Shown: one piece after another, positions 4,216 to 60,998 of the stretch
How positions within the stretch are numbered: position 1 is the stretch's first letter
Layout of the letters: each line of letters begins with the position of its first letter
Sequence record: PV764601.1
Direction: 5' to 3' (one strand)
Length of the DNA: 64,000 bases
Notes under the pieces: model-generated
Databases searched by the model: none
Seen by the model: the letters and a program-made list of their open reading frames with translations, nothing else
What the model was told of the DNA's origin: nothing
Translations under genes and position numbers: made by a program

Positions 4216-4277
4216 GGAAACTCCGATTGGGAAATGAAAAATGAGCGGCATGCCGGAGCATACCACCCATAGGTTAT

Positions 4278-4856
4278 TTACACTATTGAAACTGCGGTAA
4301 TGTCCTGCGTTTCCTTGTACTGCTGGAGGGCCTTTACGTACCACTTTGGAGCAGGGCGTGCTCGACTCCACCTAGCAAAGCTAGACTTGTCGGCCACGTA
4401 GAAACGGCGATACGTCTCCACTGCACAATCCGTGATGCACTCAGGCACCTTGTTCACAGCCAGCACAAAGTCCTCCGGTTCCCCCTCAACGTCCTGCACC
4501 CTTTCCATAGTAGGCAAGCGGCGCAACGCGGGTAGCATTTGGATCACGTTTGCGTACTTGCCATCCTTCAAGCCGTCGTACCGATAGTCGTACTCTTTGA
4601 GCATCGCTCTGAGCAGGCGGTAGCCCCAAGCGTAGTTCCGAGGGTCTTCCATCAGCCATACCGTGCAGGGATGCTTTGCGTGCGATGCGTTGAGCTTGAA
4701 CGGGATGTTGCGCTCTACCCACTTCTTCCTCTTGTTCCGAAGGTGGTGGACAAAGCACAGCATCTGTGCTTGCTCAACGATCATTTTGGTGACGTGTTGG
4801 TCACACATCATCCGAGCAGCGATGGTTGGCTTGTGGTGCAGGACAAAGATATTCAT
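4278..4856 (-). CDS. Pyrimidine-dimer DNA glycosylase / endonuclease V (DenV)-like protein
   Basis: MNIFVL...CDQHVTKMIVEQAQML, HAKHPCTVW and ETYRRFYVADK family motifs. Confidence 0.8.
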   Translation of the reverse strand: MNIFVLHHKPTIAARMMCDQHVTKMIVEQAQMLCFVHHLRNKRKKWVERNIPFKLNASHAKHPCTVWLMEDPRNYAWGYRLLRAMLKEYDYRYDGLKDGKYANVIQMLPALRRLPTMERVQDVEGEPEDFVLAVNKVPECITDCAVETYRRFYVADKSSFARWSRARPAPKWYVKALQQYKETQDITAVSIV

Positions 4857-5119
4857 GGGGTGTTACCGAACCATACCTTTGATTTGTGGTACCGAGGTTC
4901 AACCTCTACGCCGTCCTTCATGCAGAAGGTGCGTGGTGGGTATCGCTGGAACGTTAGGTGGCCACCACGTTCTTCACACCATTCCGTGTTGATTGCATCC
5001 TGCTTGCTGTCCAAGTTCTTCCCGATCACGTAGGTGCGGTTGACAAAGACTGCAAGCAGGAGAACACACGCGACGTACAGGGCACCGAACAGGAGCTTAC
5101 GCTGCTGGCGTTTCATCAT
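4853..5119 (-). CDS. Small membrane protein
   Basis: One N-terminal hydrophobic helix; overlaps its neighbours. Confidence 0.7.
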   Translation of the reverse strand: MMKRQQRKLLFGALYVACVLLLAVFVNRTYVIGKNLDSKQDAINTEWCEERGGHLTFQRYPPRTFCMKDGVEVEPRYHKSKVWFGNTP

Positions 5120-5303
5120 CCATTTCCTTGAGGGTCCGGTTGATGTGGGCCTCCTGCTGTTCCTTGGTAGGGATCACAGTGAGGTGTCGGAGGTCAGGGC
5201 GTTGCATGAGCCCTTCCTCAACCGCGATGATGCGTCGGGCTTGCTCAAGATCGTTCGCGCCAGTCAGGAATACCAGTGGGTCCAGCTTATGGGTAAGAAG
5301 CAT
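5097..5303 (-). CDS. Hypothetical protein
   Basis: Coupled ORF in the operon. Confidence 0.6.
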   Translation of the reverse strand: MLLTHKLDPLVFLTGANDLEQARRIIAVEEGLMQRPDLRHLTVIPTKEQQEAHINRTLKEMDDETPAA

Positions 5304-5725
5304 TAGCGTCCTCGTTGCAGAAGTCGAGCGTTACGGAGTGCCTGCAAATCACGTGAGCCCACGTTGTAGCGACCCAGCTCTTTGAGGTCGATCCATTGTG
5401 CATCGTGATGCTTGGCAGGTTCAATGTTGTGGATGGGATACATTTCGTCTACCTGTACCAGGTAGTACAGAATGAGTGTGTGCTTGGATGGCACACCCAG
5501 CTTGGGCGAGGCAAACCAACAGGGTTGCATATCCATGCTGATATAGCCCAGCGAAAGCAAGTCGATGCCCGTCTCTTCCTTGAGTTCACGAATCGCTGTC
5601 ATGACAGGCAACTCGTTGTGGTCAGGCTTACCGCCCGGGATCACCCACTTGTTGTTATCGCGGCGATGGATCATCGCCACGTGCGTGTTGCGAAACATCA
5701 ATATCGGACCAGCCACAAAGTCCAT
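5303..5725 (-). CDS. Nudix hydrolase
   Basis: Nudix box GGKPDHNELPVMTAIRELKEETGI. Confidence 0.92.
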   Translation of the reverse strand: MDFVAGPILMFRNTHVAMIHRRDNNKWVIPGGKPDHNELPVMTAIRELKEETGIDLLSLGYISMDMQPCWFASPKLGVPSKHTLILYYLVQVDEMYPIHNIEPAKHHDAQWIDLKELGRYNVGSRDLQALRNARLLQRGR

Positions 5726-5994
5726 TAGGCGTTCACCTTCTCCAGCGCCTTGAGGGTAGCTACCGCGAACTCCTGAGCACTCTCCCGATTGCCCGCGTGG
5801 ATATGAATGCTCACGCGTTGACCACCATAGGTGGCAGGCGTGGTGTCGTCGGGATGAATCAGGACAACGTTCTCTGGCGTAATCGCAGCGACATAGCCCG
5901 CATAGCGCGCCTCGTCAACCTGCTGTATTCTCATGCCTCGGGTGTGTGGCCCGAAGCTGACCATCTTGCTAACTGACTGCCATTTAAGCTTCAT
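5725..5994 (-). CDS. Hypothetical protein
   Basis: Coupled ORF. Confidence 0.65.
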   Translation of the reverse strand: MKLKWQSVSKMVSFGPHTRGMRIQQVDEARYAGYVAAITPENVVLIHPDDTTPATYGGQRVSIHIHAGNRESAQEFAVATLKALEKVNA

Positions 5995-6307
5995 CGCTTT
6001 TCTCGTTAGGGTCAGGTTCCCACGGATACTGCCGCATGGACAAACGAATGCGCTTCACTTGACTATCATCAACCCGATTGGGTTCTCCCTTGCGGTCAAC
6101 GTTGGCATACCAGCCCGAACCGTTGGGGCGATACTCAGTGAGGACACGACCGTCCTTGAGTTCAATGTCGTGCGCCATCTTGAGCCGATTCTTGTGGTTG
6201 CCTTCGTAGTCTATCCATTGCGTGATGTAGGGCAGGAAGTCCGGGTCACGACTAACCAAGATGGCTTGGAATTGCTCGCGGCGTTCTGAGTATACACTTC
6301 TTGTCAT
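5984..6307 (-). CDS. Hypothetical protein
   Basis: Coupled ORF. Confidence 0.7.
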   Translation of the reverse strand: MTRSVYSERREQFQAILVSRDPDFLPYITQWIDYEGNHKNRLKMAHDIELKDGRVLTEYRPNGSGWYANVDRKGEPNRVDDSQVKRIRLSMRQYPWEPDPNEKSDEA

Positions 6308-6317
6308 GACAGCTCCG

Positions 6318-7938: not shown

Positions 7939-7947
7939 GTGCGTTCC

Positions 7948-8860: not shown

Positions 8861-8880
8861 GAAGACTCCAATAATCGAGG

Positions 8881-8914
8881 GTGCCATTTTGGCACCGTTG
8901 CCATTTTGGCACCC
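8881..8914. promoter_or_regulatory. Two tandem TGCCA-N3-TGGCA palindromic boxes upstream of the CYTH gene
   Basis: gtgccattttggcacc gttgccattttggcaccc, intergenic. Confidence 0.7.
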
Positions 8915-8921
8915 TATGCAA

Positions 8922-9440: not shown

Positions 9441-9441
9441 T

Positions 9442-10011
9442 TCAATTCACCTGTGCCATAGAGAAGTTGGAACCACCTACGTAACGGCAGCCTACACCGT
9501 GCATAACCTCAAGCAGCGTAGGGCCACCGATGCGGCGCACCTTCGACCGTATCCGATACGTCATGACGTGCACTAGACTAGAGCGCGTGCTCTTGGTGTA
9601 ATTCCGCTCCTTACCATTGCGTGTGGGCAGCGACTCCAGCAAATTCAAGAGTTCGCCGTTACTCACTACCCGATTAGCTTCCATCAGGCAATGCAACAAC
9701 ACGCTCTCAGCGTGCGTAAGCTGAATCGGTACCTGCTGATCGCCCAAGGTTACATAGAGGATGCGATCTAGGTTAAAGTCCGGAGGGAACAGGTAGCGAT
9801 TGAGCGCCTGCATACGGACGCCTAGATGGTCTCGGTACTCATGTGCATTCATCCACTGAGGTACGTCATCCATACCGATGACGATCGGGAAGCGCATCTT
9901 GTTTACTTCATCGACAGAGAACAGGGACCGATGGTTGGCCATCAAAGCTTCCTTGTCCTGCACGTAGTAGGTGACGACGAAAGGGTCGTATAGCCTGATC
10001 GGGGCAGTCAT
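9442..10011 (-). CDS. OmpR/PhoB-type winged-helix DNA-binding protein without a receiver domain
   Basis: IQLTHAESVLLHCLMEANRVVSNGELL...VMTYRIRSKV...MHGVGCRY matches the Trans_reg_C pattern. Confidence 0.75.
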   Translation of the reverse strand: MTAPIRLYDPFVVTYYVQDKEALMANHRSLFSVDEVNKMRFPIVIGMDDVPQWMNAHEYRDHLGVRMQALNRYLFPPDFNLDRILYVTLGDQQVPIQLTHAESVLLHCLMEANRVVSNGELLNLLESLPTRNGKERNYTKSTRSSLVHVMTYRIRSKVRRIGGPTLLEVMHGVGCRYVGGSNFSMAQVN

Positions 10012-10038: not shown

Positions 10039-10065
10039 TATTTACAGAGTTGCCAAAATGGCACC
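10039..10065 (-). promoter_or_regulatory. Putative phage promoter CTGTAAATA with upstream palindromic box
   Basis: Minus strand GGTGCCATTTTGGCAACTCTGTAAATA, 28 nt before the wHTH start. Confidence 0.7.
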
Positions 10066-12686: not shown

Positions 12687-12688
12687 AG

Positions 12689-16683: not shown

Positions 16684-17072
16684 GCGTATGGATCCGTGTC
16701 TTGAAGGTGTAGGCACCACACGTCTTCGGTGACGCCTGCGTCGGAGGGATGCGGGTCCCACGCCAACTGTCCATCCTTGTAGATGACAGTGTGATGCCCT
16801 CGGCCTCTTACCGTGGGACCGCTTACGAGATACACACCCTGTTTGTGCTTGGTGGTGTACTTGATGTAGAGCCCGTGCTCAACCAAGAAGCTTTCAACGC
16901 TCTCCCAAAAGTCAGATGCGTCGTCTTCGCTACGGTTGAATTCGGGAACGGCGCTTAGGGGAATTTGCAGCAGGGTGGCAATAGCCGCCTCAGTGCAGTT
17001 ACCTGTCTTCGAGTTGGGGCCCACGAACTTGGTTTGGCGCACTGCTTTGGACAGGTCAAAGTCTGGGATCAT
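16680..17072 (-). CDS. Hypothetical phage protein (GNC...HTVI...DPHP; papain/C39-like pattern possible)
   Basis: Start moved to MIPDF, 21 nt after the promoter motif. Confidence 0.65.
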   Translation of the reverse strand: MIPDFDLSKAVRQTKFVGPNSKTGNCTEAAIATLLQIPLSAVPEFNRSEDDASDFWESVESFLVEHGLYIKYTTKHKQGVYLVSGPTVRGRGHHTVIYKDGQLAWDPHPSDAGVTEDVWCLHLQDTDPYA

Positions 17073-17092: not shown

Positions 17093-17120
17093 TATTTACA
17101 GGATTGCCATTTTGGCAACC
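17093..17120 (-). promoter_or_regulatory. Putative phage promoter CCTGTAAATA with palindromic box
   Basis: Minus strand GGTTGCCAAAATGGCAATCCTGTAAATA, just after a terminator. Confidence 0.7.
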
Positions 17121-17168: not shown

Positions 17169-17488
17169 CAACGCATCAAATCGCCATAGCCGTCAGACTT
17201 GGTTTCAACGATGTCCAGGATCACGCTGATTGCATTGCACACTGCCAGCACAGGAGCAGCAACCACAGCGAACATCACCAGCTTGGACGCCTCACCGCCG
17301 TTGTCACCGCCAGAAATCAGGACAGACAGCATGGCAGTCACGGGGATAATCAGGATGCTGACCACGGTGGCCAAGAACTGGAGGCCACCCTTCTTCAAAT
17401 GTCCTGCGTAGAAGTTGTGGAACCCCAGCATGCCCGTGAGCAGCGCGATGATGATGTAGAGGCCACGATTACGGGTAGAGTATGGCAT
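17168..17488 (-). CDS. TM2-domain membrane protein
   Basis: ALLTGMLGFHNFYAGHLKKG TM2 motif plus further helices. Confidence 0.8.
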   Translation of the reverse strand: MPYSTRNRGLYIIIALLTGMLGFHNFYAGHLKKGGLQFLATVVSILIIPVTAMLSVLISGGDNGGEASKLVMFAVVAAPVLAVCNAISVILDIVETKSDGYGDLMR

Positions 17489-24494: not shown

Positions 24495-24520
24495 TATTTA
24501 CAGGATGCCAAAATGGCACC
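24495..24520 (-). promoter_or_regulatory. Putative phage promoter CCTGTAAATA with palindromic box
   Basis: Minus strand GGTGCCATTTTGGCATCCTGTAAATA, just after the ART terminator. Confidence 0.7.
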
Positions 24521-27343: not shown

Positions 27344-27372
27344 ATTATGCCTGGACCCTATCCCCCTGTCAA
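27344..27372 (-). promoter_or_regulatory. Host sigma70-type promoter
   Basis: TTGACA-17 nt-CATAAT on the minus strand. Confidence 0.85.
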
Positions 27373-27456
27373 CCACTGTTCATTTTCGTTCAGCTGCCGT
27401 TCAGGTTCGATTCAGGGACAACTTGCACGAAATTGGAACCTATCGCCGGGCTATGC

Positions 27457-27492
27457 AAAAGGGCCTACCCCACGTCAGCAGGATAGGCCCTT
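27457..27492 (-). terminator. Intrinsic terminator
   Basis: Minus strand AAGGGCCTATCC-loop-GGGTAGGCCCTT-TT. Confidence 0.75.
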
Positions 27493-30544: not shown

Positions 30545-30666
30545 TTCCGCTTACCCCTCTTCCTAGTGTACTTGGATTTCCCGCGTTTCCTCACTCCCAT
30601 AGTGGTAGCCAATTCGGTCCACCCTTTGAAGAACCCATACAAGGCTGGGCTGATCCTAAACATCAT
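30541..30666 (-). CDS. 41-aa basic-tail micro-protein (not in ORF track)
   Basis: MMFRISPALYGFFKGWTELATTMGVRKRGKSKYTRKRGKRK*; GAGGT RBS; overlaps both neighbours. Confidence 0.75.
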   Translation of the reverse strand: MMFRISPALYGFFKGWTELATTMGVRKRGKSKYTRKRGKRK

Positions 30667-31186
30667 TAGGTACCTCGATAGCATGCTGGACTATCCCTAC
30701 CTTATGCAGCGCTTCGTCTATCAGATCGTCAGCGGTAGCGGTGTAGTAGAAGTAGCCGGGATCGAGTCGCATCCCGTTCACCCGATTCTGGACCGCCTCT
30801 ACGCTCTCAAAGTGAGTCAGCGCATCCTGGGGTATGGACTGCTGCCACCCGTACAGATTCGTGCTCACGTGCAGGTATTCCCTCCGGCCCCTACCACTCT
30901 TGTCCTGCCGGAACAGGACATAATCGCGCACACCCCTCTTGTACCCTCGGTCCTCCCTTGAATCTGGAGTCGCTACCTCGGTCCCCTTCGATGAGGCAGG
31001 AATTTGCACCTCGGTGTTGGCGATCACTGAGAAAAGTCGTGCTCCGAACAGGTCAGGATCAATATCGCTGTTGTCCCTGATGATTTCGGAGAGAGAAAGA
31101 CCTCGGACCACCACTAGGCGATGCAAAACAGATCGCACCACTTCGGTCACTGCGTCGTCGGGTAAAATATCTGAAATTTTGGTCAT
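30656..31186 (-). CDS. Hypothetical protein, MTKISDIL paralog family
   Basis: Start moved; first gene after the large intergenic region. Confidence 0.7.
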   Translation of the reverse strand: MTKISDILPDDAVTEVVRSVLHRLVVVRGLSLSEIIRDNSDIDPDLFGARLFSVIANTEVQIPASSKGTEVATPDSREDRGYKRGVRDYVLFRQDKSGRGRREYLHVSTNLYGWQQSIPQDALTHFESVEAVQNRVNGMRLDPGYFYYTATADDLIDEALHKVGIVQHAIEVPNDV

Positions 31187-31189
31187 TTT

Positions 31190-31830
31190 TGACCCTCGGC
31201 CATCAAAAAATTCATACCCTCGGACGGAGGGTGCGTTCTGCGTCGAAAAATTGGTCGGACAGGGCAGTGATGTTGCCATTTTGGCACCCTGTTTTGCCCA
31301 CACCCAATATTTACAGGATTGGCCTGCTCAGACTCAAAATATTTGAAAAATCCTTGCATCAAACTCGGTAATCCTTGGCAAGGATCGGGTGTCTAGACGC
31401 ATCCTGGAGCCCCTAAATTTTTTGCCCTGTGGGGTACCACGTCAAGGGCCATTTTCGGGTGTATTCCGACACTCCGACGGTGCCATTTTGGCAACGCATG
31501 AGGGGATGCCCGAGGTCCGAGAAGAAAATCTTCTTTCGGCCTCTACAGGAAGGTGCCAAATCCTTGACTCCGGTCATTCAGATGGTCAATCAGTCATATT
31601 TCGGTCAAAAAGAAGGGCCTCCACTCGTTCAAAGGGGAAGCCCTAGGGGTTTGCAGGGTGTTCGCACGAAAATACTGGTCTTTAGTGCCCTAAACTCCGG
31701 TAGTTGTCCAGATGATGCCAAAATGGCACCCTGTTGCCTTATCTGCCCGATTACTCAGTGGGTGTAACCGACAAGTAGGGAATTAGGGCGCTCAATGGTG
31801 CTGAGGATATGGGAGGGAAGTGGGTATGCG
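31190..31830. other. Candidate replication origin or genome-terminus region
   Basis: Non-coding, A/T tracts, three TGCCA-N3-TGGCA boxes (31274, 31481, 31716), promoter motif at 31308, GC-skew flip across it. Confidence 0.5.
31308..31317 (-). promoter_or_regulatory. Putative phage promoter CCTGTAAATA
   Basis: Exact motif, intergenic. Confidence 0.6.
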
Positions 31831-32243: not shown

Positions 32244-32545
32244 GATCTTCCTATGCTCCTTCTTCTCTATGGGGTGGATACCAGCTTATGTCCCTGTGCT
32301 CTCTGTATTGTGTGCAGTAGGCTTATCCCCTGTCTATGCTTCCTCCCCTATGTTCTTCCCTGTATTCTCTTCCCTCACTGTCTATGCTGCTATGGTTGTC
32401 TCCCTATCCTCCCTATCCCTAACTACCTTGTTAGTGGGGTGGGAAGCTTTTGCCGGAGGGAATGTGCAGGGGAGGAGGATAGGCGGGATGGGTGTGGATG
32501 GGCCTAGAGTGGAGGGACAGGGGAATAGGGATTGCCGGAGGGAGG

Positions 32546-36636: not shown

Positions 36637-37015
36637 CGGTATCGTGTAGGTCCAGCGACTTATACATCAGTGGAACAATGTTGATTTCGCTCGGGCGCAT
36701 CGGGTTGGCGCGTGCAACGAAACCTACCACTTGATTGCCCGGCTTCACTTCACCCCGATAGAAGGAGACACCACGCGCTTGCAGGTTGGTGAACACTTCG
36801 TTGACGCGACCTGTGATCGCAGCCCGGTTGGCAGCAGTGTTGGTTACACCTTCGTAGGAATGTGCTGCCATATGTACCAGCTTCTGGACTGCGGTGCCGA
36901 CCGCAGGATCATTAAGATCGTAACAGCCCGGAGTGGTGAATTCAGGTGGGACGATTAAGGTCGTCTCTTGCGTGTCCACTACCCTGACGTGTAGGTTCGG
37001 TGTTTGGTCGTTCAT
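36596..37015 (-). CDS. Hypothetical protein
   Basis: Coupled to SbcC. Confidence 0.7.
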   Translation of the reverse strand: MNDQTPNLHVRVVDTQETTLIVPPEFTTPGCYDLNDPAVGTAVQKLVHMAAHSYEGVTNTAANRAAITGRVNEVFTNLQARGVSFYRGEVKPGNQVVGFVARANPMRPSEINIVPLMYKSLDLHDTDAQEEETENGNEE

Positions 37016-39327
37016 GACATACCCGTTGAAATGAGTTTGGATTCGTTGCCATCCTTGACCACGGTGAAGACTCGGGCGGATGGGTATACGTCATCTAGTG
37101 GAGTGATGACGATGACGTGAGGCACTACCTTTTGCAATGCTGGGATGAAGTCGTTGACATACAGGTCACGCGCTGCCTCGCTGAGATTCGCTTCGCATTC
37201 GTCCAGCACAATGATGTTGGCACGGCGCGAGGCAGGGATCATCGGAAGCAGGGACTTCACTAGGCACAGGTTGAACTGCTTACTCTCGGCACCACTAAGG
37301 AACCGAACGTCAGAAGTCAGCGCTTCCTTGCCAGTCCCTCGGGTGACGTTGATGCTAAAGTTGTTCGCCTGCACCACGAACTCAAAACGCATAGGCTCCG
37401 GGAACACCAGCGGGGCGTTAGCGTTCATGTGGTGCTCTAGACTCAGGGCGAACTGTTTCATCACCTCCAACTTGCGGCCGTTCTTGGAGTAAATGTCGAT
37501 CAGGCTATCGAGGATCGGGAGGTCTTCCAAGTCTGCGCCAATGTTGCGTACCTGTGCCCGAAGCTGCTTGATGGCGCGCAGCAGCTTTTCCTGATACTCA
37601 ATGCGAGGTGCAAGCTCCGCGTTCTTGGCCACCATGTTAGACAGCTTCTTGCTTACCGACTCATATTCCTTGTCAGCCGATCGGAGTTCCTCAACGTCGA
37701 TCTGCGCCGCTTCCCTCAACTGTTCTTCAACAGGTAGCAGGGTGCGGATCACCGACTGCTGTGCAACCAACTTGTCACGTGCCTTGGTGCTGGGCTTCTC
37801 AGGAACGTCGCCCTTCCACTTGGGCTTGGGATTCTCTTCCAGCCATTCCAGATACTTGATGGCCTTCTCATACTTGGACACGTCGGGCAAGTCATCAAGG
37901 ATCGCTTGCAGCTTCTTGCGCTGCTTCTTGAATGCCGACAGTTCCTTCTCGTACTCTGCTGCCTCTTCCTGATACTCAGCGTAGTCCCGTGCTGCTTCGA
38001 TCCGCTCTGTTGCCTTGCGCCAGCGCTTCGCCTGATTCTCGTACTCGGGAAGATGGTCAGTGACTTTCCCGCCTTTCGAGCCACACACGAAACACTTGCC
38101 ACCCTTGCTACCGATCTTGTTGATCTGCTTCTGTAGACCGATCAGTGCTTCAAAGCGCGCACGTTCCTTATCGGCTGCCACGATCCAGTGCTTGAACGTG
38201 TCGCCTTCCAACCCGTAGTCAGCAGGGTTGAACGTGGCCTTGGCTACGGCCTCGGGTTGGGTCGGCTTGCGCAGCCCATCCAGTGCTCGACGTGCATCAC
38301 GGTCCGCCCTCTTGGCGCTTTCGATTTTCTCCCTGCACTTTTCCAGCGTGAGCTTACCCGCCTTCTCAGTGGCCTTGAGGTACTCGGCCTTCCAGCGAGT
38401 CAAGTCATCTTGGTGGCGTTCGTACTTGCGCCATGCGGTTGCAGCGTCATCCAACTTCGTGATCTTGGCGCTGACCTGTTTCAGCTGGTCCTTCAACGGA
38501 ATGCTGTGATCCAGCTTCTCCCATTCCTTCGCATGCGTGGTGTAGACCGTGTAGATGCGCTGGCGACTACGCAGTCGTTTGACCTTCTTCTCCAGCTTCT
38601 TGATCTTGCCCTGATACTTGACAGCCCTAGCGCGCAGCATATCAATGTCTACGCGTCCCGCTTCTTCGTCCAAGGCAGCCAGCTGCTTGCGTAGCTCCTT
38701 GATCCGAATCTCGCTGTCCTTCAACTCGTTGCGTCGTGCATTACATGCCGCGCGTACCAAGTCGAACTTCTCCAACCGGAACATATCAGAGAAGAACTGC
38801 ATACGATCCGTGGAGGTGCCCATCTGCAACGGGAAGGTGCGGGTGCCATGCAGATAGACGTAACTGTAGAACTCATCATCCGAAATAGGGAACAGGGTGT
38901 CAGCGATGTGCGCTTCGGCCTTGGTCGCGGTAGGGAACTTCATGTCCTTACCGTTCTCGGTGATCTGATACTTCACTGACGCAGACTTATCCCGGTACTT
39001 CTTGATGCCGTAGTCATTGCCATTACACCGAACGTCAAACTCAATTGCGCTGTTCGGTTTGATTAGCAGGCTAGTTTTGGCACCACTGTTGCGCTTGCCG
39101 ATGCTGAGTGCTGGTGCCGAGTTGCGCACCACGTTAGCAAGGGATGCAACCAACACCGACTTACCTACGCCGTTGCTGGTCTTGCGCTTGAGCCGAGAGT
39201 TCTTGTTCAGACCTTTGATGACGGTGGTGCCCTCGTACCCGAGGTCTAACTCCGCCTTCTTGAAATACACAACGTTGGTGAGGCTGAGGTGGCCGAATCG
39301 CCACCCCAGCTTCTGCTTCTTAGCCAT
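37012..39327 (-). CDS. SbcC/Rad50/gp46-like SMC ATPase
   Basis: Walker A NGVGKS, coiled coil with CFVC Zn hook, LSGAE signature, IIVLDE Walker B. Confidence 0.93.
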   Translation of the reverse strand: MAKKQKLGWRFGHLSLTNVVYFKKAELDLGYEGTTVIKGLNKNSRLKRKTSNGVGKSVLVASLANVVRNSAPALSIGKRNSGAKTSLLIKPNSAIEFDVRCNGNDYGIKKYRDKSASVKYQITENGKDMKFPTATKAEAHIADTLFPISDDEFYSYVYLHGTRTFPLQMGTSTDRMQFFSDMFRLEKFDLVRAACNARRNELKDSEIRIKELRKQLAALDEEAGRVDIDMLRARAVKYQGKIKKLEKKVKRLRSRQRIYTVYTTHAKEWEKLDHSIPLKDQLKQVSAKITKLDDAATAWRKYERHQDDLTRWKAEYLKATEKAGKLTLEKCREKIESAKRADRDARRALDGLRKPTQPEAVAKATFNPADYGLEGDTFKHWIVAADKERARFEALIGLQKQINKIGSKGGKCFVCGSKGGKVTDHLPEYENQAKRWRKATERIEAARDYAEYQEEAAEYEKELSAFKKQRKKLQAILDDLPDVSKYEKAIKYLEWLEENPKPKWKGDVPEKPSTKARDKLVAQQSVIRTLLPVEEQLREAAQIDVEELRSADKEYESVSKKLSNMVAKNAELAPRIEYQEKLLRAIKQLRAQVRNIGADLEDLPILDSLIDIYSKNGRKLEVMKQFALSLEHHMNANAPLVFPEPMRFEFVVQANNFSINVTRGTGKEALTSDVRFLSGAESKQFNLCLVKSLLPMIPASRRANIIVLDECEANLSEAARDLYVNDFIPALQKVVPHVIVITPLDDVYPSARVFTVVKDGNESKLISTGMS

Positions 39328-39763: not shown

Positions 39764-39999
39764 CTGTTCACCATAGTGAGTAGTGGCTGCACAGTTTCAG
39801 GAGTGGTACCGATGACGTGGAAGCCCACTACTTCGTGCCATCCCAAAGGCAGCTTAATGAATATCTTGCGGGTCAAGCGTAAATCTTCGTACACGGTTGC
39901 CCGTTTGAATGGATCAGTGTGTTGCAACACGTCTGCGGCCATGTCTTTGCACAGCCGCTCCATAGCGTCGTCCCCGACGTATTCAATGACCTTGCTCAT
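39760..39999 (-). CDS. Hypothetical protein
   Basis: Start MSKVI overlaps the dnaX stop. Confidence 0.6.
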   Translation of the reverse strand: MSKVIEYVGDDAMERLCKDMAADVLQHTDPFKRATVYEDLRLTRKIFIKLPLGWHEVVGFHVIGTTPETVQPLLTMVNR

Positions 40000-41246
40000 T
40001 ATCCCTTCTTGGAATCCACAACCCAGCCGATCAGGTGGGAGGTAATCATCATCCGCTCGACGCTGGCAATGCCGCCACTGATGCACTTCTGTCGGAGGTC
40101 GATCAGGGTACGCTGCAACGATGCGAGCATTTCAATCACCTTGCCCTTGCTGGGATCGAAGCCCTCGACCGAGTTCTTGATGACAGACGCGAAGCGCTTG
40201 TTGAGTGGGTTATGCCACACGTTCGGGTGGTAGCGCATGTTCTTGGTCAGTTCCGCATCCACGATGTACTGATTCAGCCAGATGCACTTGGACAGGAACG
40301 GCACCCAATCGGTACGCAGGTCGAGCATGTACTTGGCGACGCCAACACGATTGAGCCCGTAGCACGCAGTCAGCACCTTGATCGCTAGGTCGTCCAAACC
40401 TTCCTGACCACCAGCTTGTGCGTTGTTGCTCAAGATGGCCTTGAGTTCGTCGGCACTGAGCTTCGGGTTGTTAGCCAGCTGCATCTGCACAGCTTCCAGC
40501 AACTGCACGCTGTCACGCATGTAACCCTGCGACAGGTTGGCCAGATGCTCGATCACCTCATCCCCGACCTTGATGTTCTCCTTCCCTGCGATGAACTTGA
40601 TGCGCTTGATTACGTCCGCCGTCGGCACCAGCTGGATGTTCATCGGCACACAGCGATTGCGCATCGTCTGCTTGAGCATCTGCGGATCGGTGGTGCTCAG
40701 GATATACAGCGTCTGTTCCGGTGGCTTCTCCAGAGGCACCAGCAGGGCCTCAGCAGCCTGTGGTGTAAGCTGGTGCACTTCGTCCAGATGCAGGATGCGA
40801 AGGTTACCGAGGCGCGGACGGTTCTTGCTGCGCTGGATGATCGCGCGCACGTCGTCGATGCCACGCTTCTCCGAAGCATTCACCTGCTCGTAGTCAGGAT
40901 GGGACTCAATCGGCATCAGGCAGTTCTGACACTTGCCACATGCGTTCATGGTTTCGCAGTTGACGTACCGAGCGATCATCTGGCTAACAGTGGTCTTGCC
41001 ACAGCCAGTGGGACCGACCAGCAGGATCGCGCCCGGAATCTTCTTGGTCTTCAACATGCCCCTGAACTTGTTGATGATCTCCGTCTGACCAACGAGGTCA
41101 TCAATGTCCTTCGGACGCCAGCGCACAGCGAGGCTGCGATTGTCCACCGTATCGCTTACGGGTACTGCAACCTCCGTAGACTTGGACTTCTTCTTGACCT
41201 TCCCATCCTTGTTCTTGGACTTCTTCTTACTCTTCGTGTCGCTCAC
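39999..41246 (-). CDS. dnaX: DNA polymerase III gamma/tau-like clamp-loader ATPase
   Basis: LAVRWRPK, GPTGCGKTT, Zn CxxC, LDEVHQL, EKPP, RNRC, GYMRD; GTG start at 41246 with GGAGA RBS. Confidence 0.92.
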   Translation of the reverse strand: MSDTKSKKKSKNKDGKVKKKSKSTEVAVPVSDTVDNRSLAVRWRPKDIDDLVGQTEIINKFRGMLKTKKIPGAILLVGPTGCGKTTVSQMIARYVNCETMNACGKCQNCLMPIESHPDYEQVNASEKRGIDDVRAIIQRSKNRPRLGNLRILHLDEVHQLTPQAAEALLVPLEKPPEQTLYILSTTDPQMLKQTMRNRCVPMNIQLVPTADVIKRIKFIAGKENIKVGDEVIEHLANLSQGYMRDSVQLLEAVQMQLANNPKLSADELKAILSNNAQAGGQEGLDDLAIKVLTACYGLNRVGVAKYMLDLRTDWVPFLSKCIWLNQYIVDAELTKNMRYHPNVWHNPLNKRFASVIKNSVEGFDPSKGKVIEMLASLQRTLIDLRQKCISGGIASVERMMITSHLIGWVVDSKKG

Positions 41247-41280
41247 TTCGGGTTCTCCAATGGAGGCATCTGCCACTGAT

Positions 41281-41290
41281 TATTTACAGG
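41281..41290 (-). promoter_or_regulatory. Putative phage promoter CCTGTAAATA upstream of dnaX
   Basis: Exact motif following a terminator-like hairpin. Confidence 0.65.
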
Positions 41291-41302
41291 ATTCCGAATA
41301 CG

Positions 41303-49853: not shown

Positions 49854-51468
<1,615 letters not shown>

Positions 51469-51491: not shown

Positions 51492-52508
51492 TTATTGTTT
51501 ACAAGAATGTCGTTTGGCGTCGATGCGTACCACTTCATGCGGAAGCAGCAGTTCCTCAATGCCCAACTCTTGGCGCGCAAAACCATCCGGGTCAGCAATC
51601 TTTGCCAGCAGGCGTACCCGCTGTGCCCGATCTTCCTCGGTGAGTTTCTCAAACTCATCTGTGCTATCCGGTTGGTTGAACACTTCCTCAGTCTCAAAGT
51701 CCGAAGAAATATTCACCAGTTGTAGATCGCCCCTAGCCACAGCCCGCTTTGCATGCGGAGACAGGGAGTATGCGATCCCGTACTCATGAGACTGTGTAGG
51801 CGAATGCTTGGCATTCGTGATCCAGTTCTGAGTATAAGGAGCGAGCGTTCCCTTATCGGGGTTCATCTTGTTCACCGCTTTGTTCACCGCCAGCACAAAG
51901 TTTTGCGTTACGTCTTCAAGGTCAGTGCGTGGATTCTCCCGGTTGAACTTCACCGCTTGCATCATGGCGTGCCGCATGAACCGTTCAAGAATCTGATTCC
52001 TGAATTTGGTAGCTTCGGTTTCCCATGACTTGACGCGTTGAAGCACGCGACCTAGGTTCTTACCCGCACCGACTAGCTGCTCAATTCTCTCCATAGCTAT
52101 CCGACGCGACGGCAGGCGCTTCTGAGCGTAAAGCACCTCCAATTTCGGATAGTCCTTGGCCAACGTGCAGAAGCGCTTGATGATGAAGAAGAGGATGTTT
52201 CTCTCCAGCTTCATTCGGCGCACCAAGCGCACCTTATCCTGAGCCTTGTCGGCCAACAAGTACAGGTTCATGAGGTGCAGAACCTTGGGCTTGTCAACCG
52301 AACTAATCTTGCGTCCTGTGTTTGTTGCGTACCAGCAAAGCATCGCTGGCATGTTTCTATCAAAGAACTCCGTGTGCCTGATGATAGGCTCCACGGCCAG
52401 CATGAGAAGCTGGTCCAATGCAGTCATCATCTGACTATCATTCCAGCGTCCCTGCATCGTTTCCTTGACTGTCTTTGTAGCTTGGATAGATGCAGAGTTG
52501 CGACTCAT
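51492..52508 (-). CDS. Phage sigma-70-family factor (region 2 recognisable)
   Basis: EDVTQNFVLAVNKAVNKMNPDKGTLAPYTQNWI resembles region 2.2-2.4. Confidence 0.75.
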   Translation of the reverse strand: MSRNSASIQATKTVKETMQGRWNDSQMMTALDQLLMLAVEPIIRHTEFFDRNMPAMLCWYATNTGRKISSVDKPKVLHLMNLYLLADKAQDKVRLVRRMKLERNILFFIIKRFCTLAKDYPKLEVLYAQKRLPSRRIAMERIEQLVGAGKNLGRVLQRVKSWETEATKFRNQILERFMRHAMMQAVKFNRENPRTDLEDVTQNFVLAVNKAVNKMNPDKGTLAPYTQNWITNAKHSPTQSHEYGIAYSLSPHAKRAVARGDLQLVNISSDFETEEVFNQPDSTDEFEKLTEEDRAQRVRLLAKIADPDGFARQELGIEELLLPHEVVRIDAKRHSCKQ

Positions 52509-55779: not shown

Positions 55780-55807
55780 AAATGTCTCCAGCGGGACGTT
55801 TCAATAC

Positions 55808-56395
55808 TCAGCGTTTATTTACAGGATTGATCTTTACGAGGATTCCCTGCAACGCCTGCCCCAACTTGTCTTGGAGGTTCTCCAGAGGCAAGCCCGAGGG
55901 TGCGGAAATTTGGTAGTCGATGTAGTTGCTAAGGTCTTGGATTTCGACCCGATGATTGTGGAGGCCGTCCACAATGGGCTGGTCTTCGCGCTGCACTTCG
56001 ATGACGGTAAAGCCAGCACGTCGCAACACCATAGCCTCGATGGGGAAGCGCAGGTCCGTCACTACGATGTTGTCAGAGTGATAGTGGACCGATGCTTCCT
56101 TAGTCAGGGCGCGCGCAAAGAAGTCCTGCCCGAAACGTGGCTTGATGTAGTTCTCCGCCATATCGCGCCAAATGTCGCGCTTGCTCAGGTAGTCCCCTGC
56201 GATGTTACGGATCAGAGGACTGTCCTTGTCCTCCTCATCGTTAGCATCCCATCCGAACATTTCTGCGGCAGCCATCTTGACTGGAGTAGCGAACCGAAGG
56301 CGTACAAAGTCGAAGCGATCAACGAGAATATCTGCGCTGGTATCCTTGCCCGAGTGCGGCAAGCCGCAGAGTGCGATGCGGATGGGATTAGTCAC
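55808..56395 (-). CDS. Deoxynucleoside monophosphate kinase
   Basis: GLPHSGKDT, RFATPVK, VVTDLRFPIE. Confidence 0.9.
   Translation of the reverse strand: MTNPIRIALCGLPHSGKDTSADILVDRFDFVRLRFATPVKMAAAEMFGWDANDEEDKDSPLIRNIAGDYLSKRDIWRDMAENYIKPRFGQDFFARALTKEASVHYHSDNIVVTDLRFPIEAMVLRRAGFTVIEVQREDQPIVDGLHNHRVEIQDLSNYIDYQISAPSGLPLENLQDKLGQALQGILVKINPVNKR
55816..55825 (-). promoter_or_regulatory. Putative phage promoter CCTGTAAATA
   Basis: Exact motif at the end of the kinase gene, 37 nt before the next start. Confidence 0.6.
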
Positions 56396-56397
56396 TG

Positions 56398-57393
56398 TTA
56401 GTCCTTGGGTTTGATCTGACCCTTTAGGGCCTTGTCGATTTGTTTGAGCAATTGTCGGCGTCTAAAGCATACGTTGACTAACGGACACTCATCGTATCTG
56501 CTGTGCATCTTCTGATCGTAGTCATCCCGATCAGCGCAGGGCTTTTCCTCGATCAACTCGATGAAGAGTTTCTTGGAACGCTTGGCTACAGCTTCCTTCA
56601 TCGTGACGAACAGTGCATCGTCGCGCACTGCCTTCCGATATTCCTTCTTCTTGCGCTTACGCGTAGCGGGCAAGTACACGAACGCCACGTCACGGACAGT
56701 CTCGCGGCTCACGTAAGCCAAGATTGCGCCCATGACCGTAGTGCCTTCAAAGCGACCGCCGGGTTCAAACTCCTTGGCGAACACCTTTTCAAACAGACCG
56801 ACGTAACGCATGATCTGCGCGCGGTTGGCTGGGTATGGGAAGTAAGGCTCACCAGCAGGAGCGCCAGCGCGATGCTTGCGTATCGCCATAGAGCCCGTGG
56901 TCTTGTAGTCAAGAATGAAGAGGCAGTTGCCCACCCGGATCACCTTGTCGATGTGGCCAACGGTGGTACGCCAGTGGATAGAGATTTCCTCGTACTCGGG
57001 CGTGCCTCCGCACTTGCATGGCTTGTAGATGGTGAATCTACGCTTCCGACCGCATGCCTTGCAGTGCCAATGGCCTAGTGTCTCGACCTTGAGTTCTACG
57101 CCTTTGGAAACGGCCAAACGGCCCACGAAATTCTGCAAGAGTTCGTGAACCGCTGTACCGATGGAGGTGTAGAAGCTTTCGTTGAAGCTGGAGTAACGCT
57201 CTGTCTCCACGCCATTGACCACACGATTGTAGCCGACTTTGAGGGGACAGAAAGGGAGGGCGGAAGGTCGCAGGAATTCGTTACGTGATTGATCCACGGG
57301 GTCCATGCCACCGTGGTCGATTGCTTCCTTCCACCAAGAGAACAACTGTCGCTGCACCCAAGTATTGTCAGGAGGTGCGGTGAATTTTTTCAT
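56398..57393 (-). CDS. Cas4-like PD-(D/E)XK exonuclease
   Basis: LRPSALPFCP, GT.VHE, GHID, LDYKT, C-terminal CP..C. Confidence 0.8.
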   Translation of the reverse strand: MKKFTAPPDNTWVQRQLFSWWKEAIDHGGMDPVDQSRNEFLRPSALPFCPLKVGYNRVVNGVETERYSSFNESFYTSIGTAVHELLQNFVGRLAVSKGVELKVETLGHWHCKACGRKRRFTIYKPCKCGGTPEYEEISIHWRTTVGHIDKVIRVGNCLFILDYKTTGSMAIRKHRAGAPAGEPYFPYPANRAQIMRYVGLFEKVFAKEFEPGGRFEGTTVMGAILAYVSRETVRDVAFVYLPATRKRKKKEYRKAVRDDALFVTMKEAVAKRSKKLFIELIEEKPCADRDDYDQKMHSRYDECPLVNVCFRRRQLLKQIDKALKGQIKPKD

Positions 57394-57427
57394 TATGGGT
57401 ACCGGTTAGCGACAATCCTGTCTGGAG

Positions 57428-58074: not shown

Positions 58075-59006
58075 ACCGCAACGTCCGCCTTGATTGCAGG
58101 GTGCGACTTGTAGCCGATGATTTCCACGTCATCAAACTTGTAATCCCACAGGTTGTCCCGAGCGGTCTTGATGTTGATGAAGGGATAGGGATACGGCTCG
58201 CGGGTCAGCTGCATCTTGGCCAGAGACAGATGATTCGAGTACAGGTGGAAGTCAGTCACCGACAGCACAAGCTCACCCGGCTGCACACCGATAGTCTTGG
58301 CGACCAACGCATTCAGCAGCGCATACTGTGCGATGTTGAAGGGCGTTCCGAGGAAGGCGTCATTCGACCTCATGAAGAAGTGGCAGTTCATTCGACCGTT
58401 GCGCACGATGAACTGGAACAGGATGTGGCACGGCTGCAACTTCATTTCCGGCAAGTCCTGCGGATTCCACGCGCTGATGACCAGTCGGCGGCTGTACGGG
58501 TTGCGCTTCATTTCTGCCAGCACTTCCGTGATTTGATCGACACCAGCGAAATCACGCCACTGCTTGCCGTACACAGGACCGAGGTCGCCATTCTCGTCTG
58601 CCCACTCATCCCAAATCGTGACCTTGTTGTCGGTAAGGTACTTGATGTTGGTCAGGCCCTTGAGCATCCAAATCAGTTCATGGAACACCGACTTGAAGTG
58701 CACCTTCTTCGTGGTGACCAGTGGGTACACCGGCAGGCTCTGACCGAAGTAAGGACTGCTACTGTCAAGCACCGTATGCGGGTGCATGTTGAATCGCATC
58801 TGATGGCAGAACTGCGACAGGGTGCCGGTGCCAGTACGATCAGGGACAGGATCACCGTGCCCGAAGATGCTAGCGAGGCCGCGCTCGTATTCGCCAAAGG
58901 GACTGCGAACGGCAACGCATTGATCGTATCGGAAGGTGTCACGTTCGTGACGAATCTGCTCCTCAATGGGAGCGAACCACTTGGGGTAGGTCAGGTCGAG
59001 AGTCAT
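58071..59006 (-). CDS. thyA: Thymidylate synthase
   Basis: DRTGTGT, TTKK, GPVYG.QWR, SRR, PCH, RSND..G.PFNIA. Confidence 0.97.
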   Translation of the reverse strand: MTLDLTYPKWFAPIEEQIRHERDTFRYDQCVAVRSPFGEYERGLASIFGHGDPVPDRTGTGTLSQFCHQMRFNMHPHTVLDSSSPYFGQSLPVYPLVTTKKVHFKSVFHELIWMLKGLTNIKYLTDNKVTIWDEWADENGDLGPVYGKQWRDFAGVDQITEVLAEMKRNPYSRRLVISAWNPQDLPEMKLQPCHILFQFIVRNGRMNCHFFMRSNDAFLGTPFNIAQYALLNALVAKTIGVQPGELVLSVTDFHLYSNHLSLAKMQLTREPYPYPFINIKTARDNLWDYKFDDVEIIGYKSHPAIKADVAV

Positions 59007-59263
59007 GGCTGGATTACGTTGATGGGAGTGTTGCCGACCAAGCAAGTACGATGGTCAGGGTCGTTTGCGTACAGAGGGTTGCCACCCTGCTTCTTACACA
59101 GCTCCGAATACAGCTGGCTGTTGTGCTCGTTGAGTCGAGCCTCGTTCCGTTCCTTGATGAAGGTACCGTAAACGATGATTGCGACTAGGGCCAAGATCAA
59201 CACGACTAGAACCGGATTGTACGAGGGAGGGTCTTTCTGAGTATGGTGAGGGATCGTCATCAC
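59003..59263 (-). CDS. Small membrane protein
   Basis: TM helix plus a Cys pair. Confidence 0.7.
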   Translation of the reverse strand: MMTIPHHTQKDPPSYNPVLVVLILALVAIIVYGTFIKERNEARLNEHNSQLYSELCKKQGGNPLYANDPDHRTCLVGNTPINVIQP

Positions 59264-59463
59264 TATGCCTTTATGAGTCTGGACCCGTAGGGTAAGAGTT
59301 CGTCCATGCGTTGACTGGTAGAGCCTTCGCCAATCAAAGCTCCATTCTGCACTCGGAGGGGATCATGAAATTTCTTGCTGCGATCCATCGCTGCCCGCTG
59401 TTCAGGGGTTGGAGTGTACGGCCTGTTTCGGGCCAAGAACGGAGACAGTTCGGAATCGTTCAT
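59263..59463 (-). CDS. Hypothetical protein
   Basis: Coupled ORF. Confidence 0.6.
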   Translation of the reverse strand: MNDSELSPFLARNRPYTPTPEQRAAMDRSKKFHDPLRVQNGALIGEGSTSQRMDELLPYGSRLIKA

Positions 59464-60065
59464 GACTTTTTCTTACGCTTCTTCTTGGGAGTTGTGGTAG
59501 GTACGGCGTTAACCTTCGCGTCAATGTAATCGTGGTACTTGGCCCGGAAGGTCTTGACCATGAGGGGAGACTTGCGCTTGGCATTGGTCTTGCTAAGAGC
59601 GGCAAGAAACGGACTATCCTTGACCGCCAGCACAAGATCGGATTTACTCAGGACACGGCGGCGCGCAGATACGCTAGTGTTGAGTGTGTCCCGTGCTACA
59701 GGGGTGGGCAGAGTCCTACCATCGTCGCTGTCCACGTTGATGACCATGTAATCCAGCCCAAGGCGGCGTGCCATGATTTCGCAAGCACCTCGGTAGTAGT
59801 CGTGAGCCACCAACGTTACGTCGTTCTTGCGTGCAAGGCCGCTGACCTCAGCTTCGATGTCCGCCATTGCAGGATCGTACTCTATGCGTCCGGGCAGGAT
59901 CAGCACGCGCATCTTCGTGCTCAACTTGGCGTGCTTGGAGAACGGGTAGTGACGTGGTGCAGGGATCGTACACGGCCACGTACCCGGATACTTCTTGGCG
60001 TCCGTTGGAGTAATGTCTACTTCCGGCTTGGCTGGTTCAGGTTGTTTGGCCATCGGTGTACTCAA
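59460..60065 (-). CDS. Hypothetical alpha/beta protein (possible SLOG-like fold) with basic C-tail
   Basis: Weak pattern only. Confidence 0.6.
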   Translation of the reverse strand: MSTPMAKQPEPAKPEVDITPTDAKKYPGTWPCTIPAPRHYPFSKHAKLSTKMRVLILPGRIEYDPAMADIEAEVSGLARKNDVTLVAHDYYRGACEIMARRLGLDYMVINVDSDDGRTLPTPVARDTLNTSVSARRRVLSKSDLVLAVKDSPFLAALSKTNAKRKSPLMVKTFRAKYHDYIDAKVNAVPTTTPKKKRKKKS

Positions 60066-60549
60066 CAGTTGGGTTCAAGGCTGCGGTCTGCATGACTTCC
60101 CAAAGAGCATGCCATCGGAAGGAGTGAGGCAAGGTGAACCTGTTCTGGAAGGCCACCGACCGAATGTATTCATCGCCTGCTTCGCCCATCGCCACGGTGT
60201 ATTCAAGAGCACGTGGAACCACCTTCAACACCGGCTCTCCGTCGTGGATCACGAACTCATAGCTAACGCCCGGCGTGTTCGCAAGGCCATCCATCACAAC
60301 CTTGTTGAGGGACACTGCTTCCGAATGCGCAGCTTCCATTTCTCGCAGGGACTGCTGATAGCGGGTAGCTGCCAGCGGAAGGGCCGCAACCAAATCGCGC
60401 AGGCGGCGCAGATGGATCAAGCGCTTCTGATCGAACTCATCGGTATCATCAGCAGTCGCTTCACTGACTTCCAGTTCTTCTTCAAGCCACTTGAGCGTGG
60501 AGTGGTGTGGAGCAAGATCGAACAGGTCAAACACTGGATTGCGAATCAT
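60037..60549 (-). CDS. Hypothetical protein
   Basis: Coupled ORF. Confidence 0.7.
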   Translation of the reverse strand: MIRNPVFDLFDLAPHHSTLKWLEEELEVSEATADDTDEFDQKRLIHLRRLRDLVAALPLAATRYQQSLREMEAAHSEAVSLNKVVMDGLANTPGVSYEFVIHDGEPVLKVVPRALEYTVAMGEAGDEYIRSVAFQNRFTLPHSFRWHALWEVMQTAALNPTVEYTDGQTT

Positions 60550-60946
60550 TGGCTTCTCTCAGAATCATAAATGGATGCTTGCTACCATTCGGCGAAAACT
60601 TGAGGTGTTGCATGCCGAGCTTGTAGCCTTGAATGAGACTGCGCATGTAGAGCGGTTCAACTCGGCGCAGCAATTTACGGGCGCAGGGGTAGAGCACAGT
60701 GTACTCGGTGCCTAGCGCGTTGATAGCGTGGCGCAGTAGTTCGTGCAGGACTGCGCGAGGGAAGCGCTTGAATCGTTTCGGAAGTTCAATGTCCGTCACG
60801 ATTGCCCACCACTTCCCGTCATATTGGTGGGTGGCGTACCAAACCACTACCACCGGAACTCCATCTGAGCACCACGTCTCCGTTTGGACAGGTCCGTTGA
60901 ATGGTTTTCGGGAGGGCTCAGTAGTAAGTTCGACAGTCAAATCCAT
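60527..60946 (-). CDS. Hypothetical protein
   Basis: First gene after the promoter motif. Confidence 0.7.
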   Translation of the reverse strand: MDLTVELTTEPSRKPFNGPVQTETWCSDGVPVVVVWYATHQYDGKWWAIVTDIELPKRFKRFPRAVLHELLRHAINALGTEYTVLYPCARKLLRRVEPLYMRSLIQGYKLGMQHLKFSPNGSKHPFMILREANDSQSSV

Positions 60947-60975
60947 AGTAGAAAAATCCCTAGGTCGTCAGGGGT

Positions 60976-60998
60976 TATTTACAGGATGCCAAAACGCA
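60976..60998 (-). promoter_or_regulatory. Putative phage promoter CCTGTAAATA with a degenerate box
   Basis: + strand tatttacagg atgccaaaacgca. Confidence 0.6.

Follow-up and report, generated by a model that had tools for sequence, protein, structure and literature searches.

The final 64 kb of the genome of Xanthomonas phage PhiXhv-12, a stretch of 64,000 nucleotides identical to positions 163649-227648 of record PV764601.1 and referred to here as the window, carries two short recurrent DNA elements, namely a block with the consensus ATCCTGTAAATA(A/T) and a palindrome, TGCCAWWWTGGCA. Both observations are real and lie far above chance. In the explanation that we favour, with a probability of roughly 0.65 for the whole, the block is a phage-specific promoter of the -10-only type, its start sites being placed by the distances to the start codons, and the palindrome is most likely an operator to which a lineage-specific dimeric regulator would bind, as judged by the symmetry and arrangement of its copies. 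Promoter block and operator belong to known kinds of phage gene control and do not overturn current ideas of it; the particular sequences were previously undescribed. Together, a conserved GTAAA-type core, a sigma-70-type early class and a 17-bp operator give a testable outline of the transcription programme of these jumbo phages.

PhiXhv-12 is a virulent jumbo myovirus with a genome of 227,648 bp, and in the window every annotated gene except one small open reading frame (ORF) lies on the minus strand. The major capsid protein and the sigma protein group it with BCSR5, BcepSauron, Motura, phiRSL1, PaBG and others, at 26-43% amino acid identity. None of phiRSL1, PaBG, BCSR5, Motura and the PhiXhv group is known to encode a multisubunit polymerase. 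Promoters are mentioned nowhere in the paper describing PhiXhv-12; the wider literature, searched for TGTAAATA or GTAAATA in connection with phages or jumbo phages, gave nothing relevant, searches on promoters of phiRSL1, PaBG and Y3 gave nothing, and we found no published promoter map for phiRSL1, PaBG, BCSR5, Motura or the PhiXhv group. Scanning the entire window against Rfam produced zero matches. PhiXhv phages are in development for biocontrol of lettuce leaf spot, and compact promoters with an operator could serve as parts for engineering and for timing studies.

Counts, consensus and position of the promoter block

The plus-strand form TATTTACAG occurs exactly seven times in the window against 0.16 copies expected, a number reached in none of 100 shuffled sequences. 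All seven positions listed in an initial annotation of the window (10039, 17093, 24495, 31308, 41281, 55816 and 60976) were borne out, and the variant that it placed at 4275 exists, with the sense sequence ATAGTGTAAATA. For genome-wide motif counts the whole 227,648-bp record was read rather than the window alone. On this scale TGTAAATA is found 19 times against 0.48 expected, with nine copies on the plus strand within plus-strand gene blocks, ten on the minus strand within minus-strand blocks and no antisense copy (0/19). The word is thus not equally common inside genes or on both strands, since all 19 copies are gene-sense and at gene boundaries. Thirteen lie fully within annotated gaps, which make up 3.9% of the genome (P ~1e-14), and the other six fall in gaps of smaller size, in the final codons of the gene before them or in a probably mis-annotated N-terminus. 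TGTAAATA is also the strongest non-coding word, both genome-wide and in the intergenic set.

Alignment of the 19 sites reads A-T-(C/a)-C-T-G-T-A-A-A-T-A-(A/T), in which TGTAAATA is invariant and the base following TAAATA is A, T or C. An information-content profile of all 19 genomic copies shows no conservation upstream beyond ATCC, in agreement with the earlier statement that a -35 box is absent. Likely start codons are located 6-39 nucleotides (nt) past the block in most genomic cases (19 nt at 24495 and 20 nt at 17093). The window copies are all gene-sense (minus) and stand 6-59 nt ahead of likely start codons, consistent with the pre-gene position initially claimed for them; four of the eight come after visible terminator hairpins, where the initial annotation had said 'often'. 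With start codons this close, the block can sit only at around -10. The TGTAAATA class, being without a -35 element, does not conform to the bipartite TTGACA-17-TATAAT consensus of host sigma-70, and scans of the window for that consensus showed no enrichment, the sole strong site being an early promoter at 27372-27344.

Collectively these data support the phage-promoter reading of the initial annotation, in a -10-only, phage-specific form. In our model the host core RNA polymerase together with a phage-encoded specificity factor would use ATCCTGTAAATA(A/T), and transcription would start a few bases past TAAATA, given start-codon distances as short as 6-20 nt. Variant blocks such as ATCCTGTAAACG, ahead of the DNA polymerase gene in the PhiXhv-12 genome, suggest a few additional promoter members. 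The proposed promoters in the window are as follows.

4275..4286, minus strand: variant promoter block ATAGTGTAAATA, with a terminator-like hairpin between it and gene 3406-4251
10039..10050, minus strand: promoter block ACTCTGTAAATA (ACCCTGTAAATA in relatives), 27 nt ahead of the ATG of ORF 9442-10011
17093..17104, minus strand: promoter block ATCCTGTAAATA, after a terminator and 20 nt ahead of the ATG at 17072
24495..24506, minus strand: promoter block ATCCTGTAAATA, after a terminator (24567-24548) and 19 nt ahead of an unannotated ATG
31308..31319, minus strand: promoter block ATCCTGTAAATA, heading the 30656-31279 operon, with an operator downstream at about +14 to +30
41281..41292, minus strand: promoter block ATCCTGTAAATA, after a terminator and upstream of the clamp-loader gene annotated as DnaA
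55816..55827, minus strand: promoter block ATCCTGTAAATA, within the last codons of a kinase gene
60976..60987, minus strand: promoter block ATCCTGTAAATA, after a terminator; the adjoining TTTTGGCA is an operator half-site only

The block at 55816 heads an operon that runs from a peptidase-like gene through the sigma gene. At 17093 the block would fall within coding sequence if the annotated start at 17171 were used, and that start is probably wrong. Immediately after the variant at 4275, and ahead of gene 3406-4251, lies a hairpin with a 13-bp stem and a T-run (4241-4270), representing either an attenuator-like arrangement or else the terminator of the upstream gene. The upstream 192-amino-acid gene near 4275 is absent in Ep026.

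Genes behind the block and other promoter classes

The genes found behind TGTAAATA encode helicase, primase, the Pol III beta clamp, the clamp loader, topoisomerase, acyl carrier protein and nucleotide pyrophosphohydrolase, alongside the sigma-containing operon and operons of small genes without assigned function. The 70-kb structural block of PhiXhv-12 contains no gene-sense copy, compared with 9-19 per 50-70 kb elsewhere, and the 33-kb structural block of Motura contains one sense copy only. With replication, nucleotide-metabolism and accessory genes behind it and hardly any copies in the structural blocks, the motif is not a late class; it is a phage-specific class for non-structural 'middle' genes.

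A separate early class comprises five genomic promoters of the sigma-70-consensus or extended -10 type, each behind a conserved upstream block of ~70 nt. The one within the window, at 27372-27344, reads TTGACA-17-CATAAT. These early promoters are found at 27344-27460 (minus strand) of the window and at 90.7k, 125.1k, 134.5k and 149.2k of the record, with the upstream block GATTTTTCAAAGGGTGCTCGAACTGAACCTGAACGGCAGCTGAACGGGAATCAGGGGTGG and a conserved leader in common.

The word AATTTTA(G/C) has five copies genome-wide (record 25645, 34865, 46224, 53010 and 55104). Every copy is gene-sense and within the structural block, and four are found in gaps ahead of virion genes. In PaBG the related TAATTT has seven sense copies and no antisense copy, five being before annotated gene starts, including that of the tail sheath, and Motura has TAAATTTTATA twice. 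From these few sites, AATTTTA(G/C)/TAATTT is a possible candidate for the late promoter class. A first, looser pattern was dropped as it had no strand bias (12 sense, 32 antisense), and the tighter AATTTTA[GC] was kept as a lead.

The promoter core in related phages

GTAAATA is the top over-represented word in 50 kb of BCSR5, with 16 sense copies, no antisense copy and the consensus GTAGTAAATA. Positions 1-50 kb of Motura hold 19 sense and no antisense copies (consensus AATCGTAAATA), and 50 kb of phiRSL1 four sense and no antisense copies, a weaker signal than in BCSR5 and Motura. The sigma neighbourhoods of the metagenomic relatives L015, L012 and L014, whose sigma proteins are 56-62% identical to that of PhiXhv-12, contain (C/T)TTGTAAATAA, and all three have a promoter at the place equivalent to 55816, at the end of a kinase-like gene before a peptidase-like gene. 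In 21 kb of L016 (sigma 42% identical) the form is TCCTGTAAA(G/C)A. A 50-kb stretch of PaBG has no GTAAATA, and its TGTAAA(C/G/A) occurs 11 times in sense and twice in antisense, one copy lying between a terminator and a ribosome-binding site. A family-wide claim for GTAAATA was therefore rejected as too strong, PaBG having TGTAAA(C/G)A in its place. As judged by these counts, a GTAAA core with lineage-specific flanks appears to be common to several genera of this jumbo-phage group. The bases after GTAAA vary by lineage: L016 and PaBG have (C/G)-A, and T-A follows in BCSR5, Motura and the PhiXhv group.

Counts and geometry of the palindrome

TGCCAWWWTGGCA has eight copies against 0.00 expected, at 8882, 8899, 10051, 17105, 24506, 31274, 31481 and 31716. 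All eight palindromes of the 227-kb genome are thereby confined to window positions 8882-31728, a 23-kb accessory region, and they adjoin only three of the 19 promoters. The window-wide coupling, or general two-part code, that the initial annotation had put forward does not hold on these figures. Its free copies at 31274, 31481 and 31716 are correctly placed, whereas its tandem pair at 8881/8898 is off by one (8882/8899). The gaps of 2-3 nt that it described between the palindrome and CTGTAAATA at 10051, 17105 and 24506, with the AAA/TTT spacer either way round, were found as stated. Its 'degenerate' copy at 60987 keeps the TTTTGGCA arm but not the other, and so is a half-site only.

The full site is a 17-bp two-fold sequence, G-N-TGCCA-WWW-TGGCA-N-C, with half-site centres 10 bp apart and the outer G/C kept in 17 of 18 flanks (nine sites, counting an extra copy in relatives). 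At the three promoters this site overlaps the 5' edge of the block by 2-3 bp and spans about -33 to -17, and its A/T centre takes either orientation, the sense strand carrying AAA or TTT depending on the promoter. The predicted operators are listed below; being two-fold, they are given without a strand.

8880..8913, no strand: tandem 17-bp operators with a centre-to-centre distance of 17 bp, shortly before the probable CYTH gene start
10049..10065, no strand: 17-bp operator GGTGCCATTTTGGCAAC (sense), sharing 2 bp with the 5' edge of promoter 10039
17103..17119, no strand: 17-bp operator with a 2-bp overlap with promoter 17093
24504..24520, no strand: 17-bp operator with a 3-bp overlap with promoter 24495
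31272..31288, no strand: 17-bp operator downstream of promoter 31308 (about +14 to +30), covering the annotated ATG of ORF 30656-31279
31479..31495, no strand: free 17-bp operator in a 475-nt intergenic hub upstream of 31308
31554..31566, no strand: operator with one arm replaced (TTGCCAT to CAAGGAT) in PhiXhv-12, intact in PhiXhv-15 and Ep026
31714..31730, no strand: free 17-bp operator at the upstream end of the hub

No TGTAAATA is found near the tandem pair at 8882/8899, and the 475-nt hub holds a cluster of three to four operator copies. These features are those of dimeric-repressor operators, which are two-fold sites of 14-18 bp with their halves separated by one helical turn, placed on or just past promoters and grouped in a control region. 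Our best reading of the 17-bp site is hence an operator bound by a dimeric regulator, the first of the two options in the initial annotation. If it is an operator, repression is somewhat more probable than not, as the downstream and promoter-distant copies point to repression or a roadblock rather than recruitment. By occlusion or as a roadblock, a bound dimer would then keep four or five transcription units of the accessory region (8.9-31.7 kb) repressed or time their shut-off. The arrangement resembles lambdoid operators (17-18 bp, bound by helix-turn-helix dimers) in its 17-bp two-fold symmetry, centres 10 bp apart, orientation-free A/T centre, promoter overlap, tandem or clustered copies and a probably autoregulated control hub. 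It differs in that PhiXhv-12 is virulent, the best binder candidate is an OmpR-type winged helix rather than a Cro/CI fold, and the sites occupy five loci across 23 kb.

The operator system looks specific to the species lineage, since the genes of its region lack homologues in intermediate relatives (searches with the winged-helix ORF and an aminopropyltransferase gave near-identical proteins only) and the composite operator-plus-promoter pattern had no match in IMG/VR and was not found in related metagenomic contigs. Fourteen matches to the composite in Joint Genome Institute (JGI) metagenomes were rejected, as they are on unrelated contigs of 36-42% GC content and nine represent one locus; the ~4 independent matches equal the number estimated by chance.

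Within the operator hub lies a copy of a long repeated intergenic element, CCCACAGGGCnnnAAATTTAGRGGCTCCAG...ATCCTTGC(G/C), found at 31371-31430 and ~49816 of the window and at 64234-64268 and 160820 of the record. The hub copy includes a perfect 15-bp palindrome, ATCCTTGCCAAGGAT, and the word CAAGGAT is the same as that replacing the lost operator arm in PhiXhv-12. Further along, a 302-nt non-coding stretch (32244-32545) has a sense strand that changes from C/T-rich to purine-rich halfway along, with repeated CATAG(A/G) and ATAGGGA words and many internal complementarities; its RNA fold is no better than that of shuffled sequence (z 0.3).

Other palindromes next to promoters

Three further promoters have different palindromes, which end 1-4 nt before TG.

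record 88708: palindrome GATTTCTA-CAGT-TAGAAATC, a member of an iteron-like family in an 803-bp divergent region
record 161980: palindrome GGCCA-AGGA-TGGCC, adjoining a promoter
record 150371: 10-bp GC-rich pair, adjoining a promoter

The 803-bp divergent region (record 87950-88780) separates the structural block from a plus-strand block and contains iteron-like repeats GTTAGAAATCGAACTCCTAAAGG in three to four direct and inverted copies, one of which overlaps promoter 88708. This region could be an origin or a control hub.

Candidate proteins

The initial annotation had named a sigma factor and four helix-turn-helix or winged-helix proteins as candidates. The sigma factor is real, and from the four others one weak OmpR-type winged helix (9442-10011) was substantiated. 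The proteins considered are these.

51492-52508, minus strand: phage sigma-70-family protein of 338 amino acids, with a body like sigma1.2/sigma2 and, at the C-terminus, a small conserved helical domain
9442-10011, minus strand: ORF with a weak OmpR/PhoB-type winged-helix C-terminal domain, the first gene behind the operator-bearing promoter at 10039
30656-31279, minus strand: ORF of 207 amino acids with no detectable fold, at the control region with three to four operators, the richest operator context

The sigma protein matches Sigma70_r2 (weakly, E value 0.0013), a sigma-70/ECF superfamily model and phrog_17569, with weaker, sub-threshold matches of the SigE type. A structural model made with 15 homologues (predicted local distance difference test score, pLDDT, 76.5) resembles sigma-70 regions 1.2-2 in holoenzyme structures (Foldseek probability 1.0, E value ~3e-3, template-modelling score 0.4-0.47), and the small C-terminal helical domain is highly conserved. 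A search of IMG/VR with the protein found no relatives. It is the only sigma-family protein detected in the genome. No phage RNA polymerase was seen in the record annotation or in Pfam and PHROG scans of the unannotated ORFs of 475-892 amino acids, the largest ORF, an annotated helicase of 1623 amino acids, being outside these scans; the 892-amino-acid ORF received no assignment from Pfam or PHROG.

The product of ORF 9442-10011 is a candidate for the operator-binding protein. Its match to Trans_reg_C (E value 1.7e-4) is below the Pfam threshold, two NCBIfam models match the same residues weakly, and a single-sequence AlphaFold model was unusable (pLDDT 34). The ORF at 30656-31279 is an alternative candidate for the regulator. 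The annotated DNA-binding protein at 4278-4856 was rejected as a required binder, being absent in Ep026, where all the palindromes remain.

Alternative explanations

Several findings weigh against the promoter and operator assignments or their partners. Pfam, PHROG and NCBIfam searches of ~25 operator-neighbouring ORFs revealed no clear helix-turn-helix protein, one weak winged helix aside. A site centred near -25 could activate instead of repress. The 13-bp cores show 0 changes in 260 positions across PhiXhv-15, Ep026 and L018 (a Logan contig), compared with differences of 2.5% in the flanks, but this conservation is modest support of little weight as these close relatives are ~97% identical. 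The sigma gene is itself behind this promoter class, within an operon in PhiXhv-12, L012, L014 and L015 and with a GTAAATA block immediately ahead of it in BCSR5. This position could mean autoregulation or else, as the cascades of other phages would suggest, a sigma factor serving a later class. The candidate late motif AATTTTA(G/C)/TAATTT, moreover, fits a sigma-70-type -10 better than the block does.

These last points bear on which factor reads the promoter. That the 51492-52508 protein does so is a tentative assignment, to which we give a little under even odds. Less likely, another early phage factor or a host holoenzyme in modified form reads the promoter, and the late class is the one that the annotated sigma serves, an arrangement that would leave the operator reading unchanged. 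Along with the position of the sigma gene, the strand bias of the late motif (all five copies gene-sense in the structural block; seven sense and no antisense copies in PaBG) and the retention in TAATTT of T-12, A-11 and T-7 of the canonical -10 are in keeping with such a division of labour. Nevertheless, we found no second sigma-like protein, the PhiXhv-12 genome lacks a homologue of PaBG gp112, which has been proposed as a second sigma, a -10-type melting element normally requires a reader of the sigma family, and the late motif is based on few sites. Either way the scheme is like the phage sigma cascades of SPO1 (gp28, gp33/34) and phiEco32 (gp36), in which a host sigma-70-type early class precedes phage-specific classes on the host core polymerase; unlike the bipartite SPO1 and phiEco32 promoters (-35 and -10), PhiXhv-12 has one conserved block, and its pairing with sigma is a candidate only.

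The palindrome might alternatively make a true two-part promoter, whose bound protein would activate, or stand in for a -35 element, by recruiting the polymerase or changing its shape, in the manner of MotA/AsiA at T4 middle promoters or of MerR-type proteins working from the spacer. The operator at about -33 to -17 touches the promoter block, a -35 element is absent, and different palindromes occupy the same place on other promoters. We consider this unlikely given that 16 of the 19 promoters share the same core without the palindrome, one copy is at +14 to +30, and the tandem pair and hub copies are away from promoter blocks, positions that suit repression and not recruitment. The comparable T4 middle promoters (MotA box at -30 with a sigma-70 -10) likewise have a protein site upstream of the -10 in place of the -35, but the MotA box lacks symmetry and every middle promoter has one, whereas the PhiXhv-12 palindrome is at three of 19. 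It is the promoters with other palindromes alone that speak for a general promoter-plus-palindrome architecture. In an extended form of this idea, which we regard as improbable, the slot upstream of the -35-less promoter would be a general docking site for different lineage-specific dimeric proteins that switch promoter subsets on, and TGCCA-N3-TGGCA, GGCCA-N4-TGGCC and TTTCTA-N4-TAGAAA could be interchangeable -35 surrogates for a sigma factor that does not read a -35. If true, this would amount to a modular two-part code in phiRSL1/PaBG-like jumbo phages.

Hairpins have also to be considered. The second option of the initial annotation was that the palindrome is an extruded DNA hairpin recognised by the polymerase as at N4 early promoters. 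Those promoters have a stem of 5-7 bp and a 3-nt loop, a geometry that the palindrome, as a short inverted repeat with a 3-nt spacer, reproduces, and its single strands fold at -4.9 to -6.9 kcal/mol. However, the loop on a given strand changes between AAA and TTT from promoter to promoter, which is tolerable for a two-fold protein on duplex DNA and not for a strand-specific hairpin reader. In addition, the 17-bp symmetry and conserved outer G/C indicate recognition of the duplex, some copies, past a promoter or far from any, have no link to a start site, and the annotation and ORF scans described above revealed no virion or single-subunit RNA polymerase, the 1623-amino-acid helicase again excepted. 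Hairpin extrusion was discarded on these grounds as highly improbable. A different proposal, that the free copies at 31274 and 8882/8899 act in RNA by masking start codons or ribosome-binding sites, is agreeable with an ATG inside the palindrome that is the annotated start at 31279 and 8887, and with the stable fold of the tandem pair (-15.4 kcal/mol, z -6.2, folded as DNA). Yet the three promoter-adjoining copies are upstream of the start site and after terminators, the spacer orientation varies, and gene callers put the CYTH start downstream. We think such action improbable, and it could be a secondary effect at most.

The block has finally to be compared with T4 late promoters, from whose sequence TATAAATA, itself without a -35 element (PMC7892883), TGTAAATA differs by one base, as had been pointed out initially. 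On this alternative a gp55-like factor would read the block, coupled to replication via the phage sliding clamp, and the phage does encode its own clamp and clamp loader. The likeness to the T4 system (gp55 with gp33/gp45) extends to a single 8-bp, A/T-rich, TATAAATA-like block at the inferred -10, the lack of a conserved -35 and the use of host core polymerase. The T4 block serves virion genes, however, whereas that of PhiXhv-12 heads replication genes, including those of the clamp and clamp loader, together with nucleotide-metabolism and accessory genes, and is nearly absent from the structural modules of PhiXhv-12 and Motura, so that the analogy fails as to gene class. Furthermore, the PhiXhv-12 block has a conserved 5' extension, ATCC, and its sigma, with 338 amino acids and a sigma-70-like sigma1.2/sigma2 body that matched only Sigma70_r2, the sigma-70/ECF superfamily and phrog_17569, does not appear to be of the gp55 type. 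A T4-type late promoter is accordingly very unlikely, and a -10-only middle promoter is the reading that we retain.

Gene starts and annotations

The results correct several gene starts and annotations. The annotated starts at 8887 and 31279 use an ATG within a palindrome, and the GTG start at 41276 is only 5 nt past a promoter block; all three appear wrong. Better starts with ribosome-binding sites are found downstream of doubtful ones, for example the ATG at 17072 for 17171. The ORF annotated as 'DnaA' (39999-41276) is an AAA+ clamp-loader subunit (DNA_pol3_delta2, 7.5e-29), and the hypothetical 475-amino-acid ORF at 50041-51468 is a single-stranded DNA-binding protein (phrog_15004). The 'endonuclease' at 37012-39327 is SbcC-like, and the 'CRISPR/Cas associated protein' at 56398-57393 is a PD-(D/E)XK nuclease.

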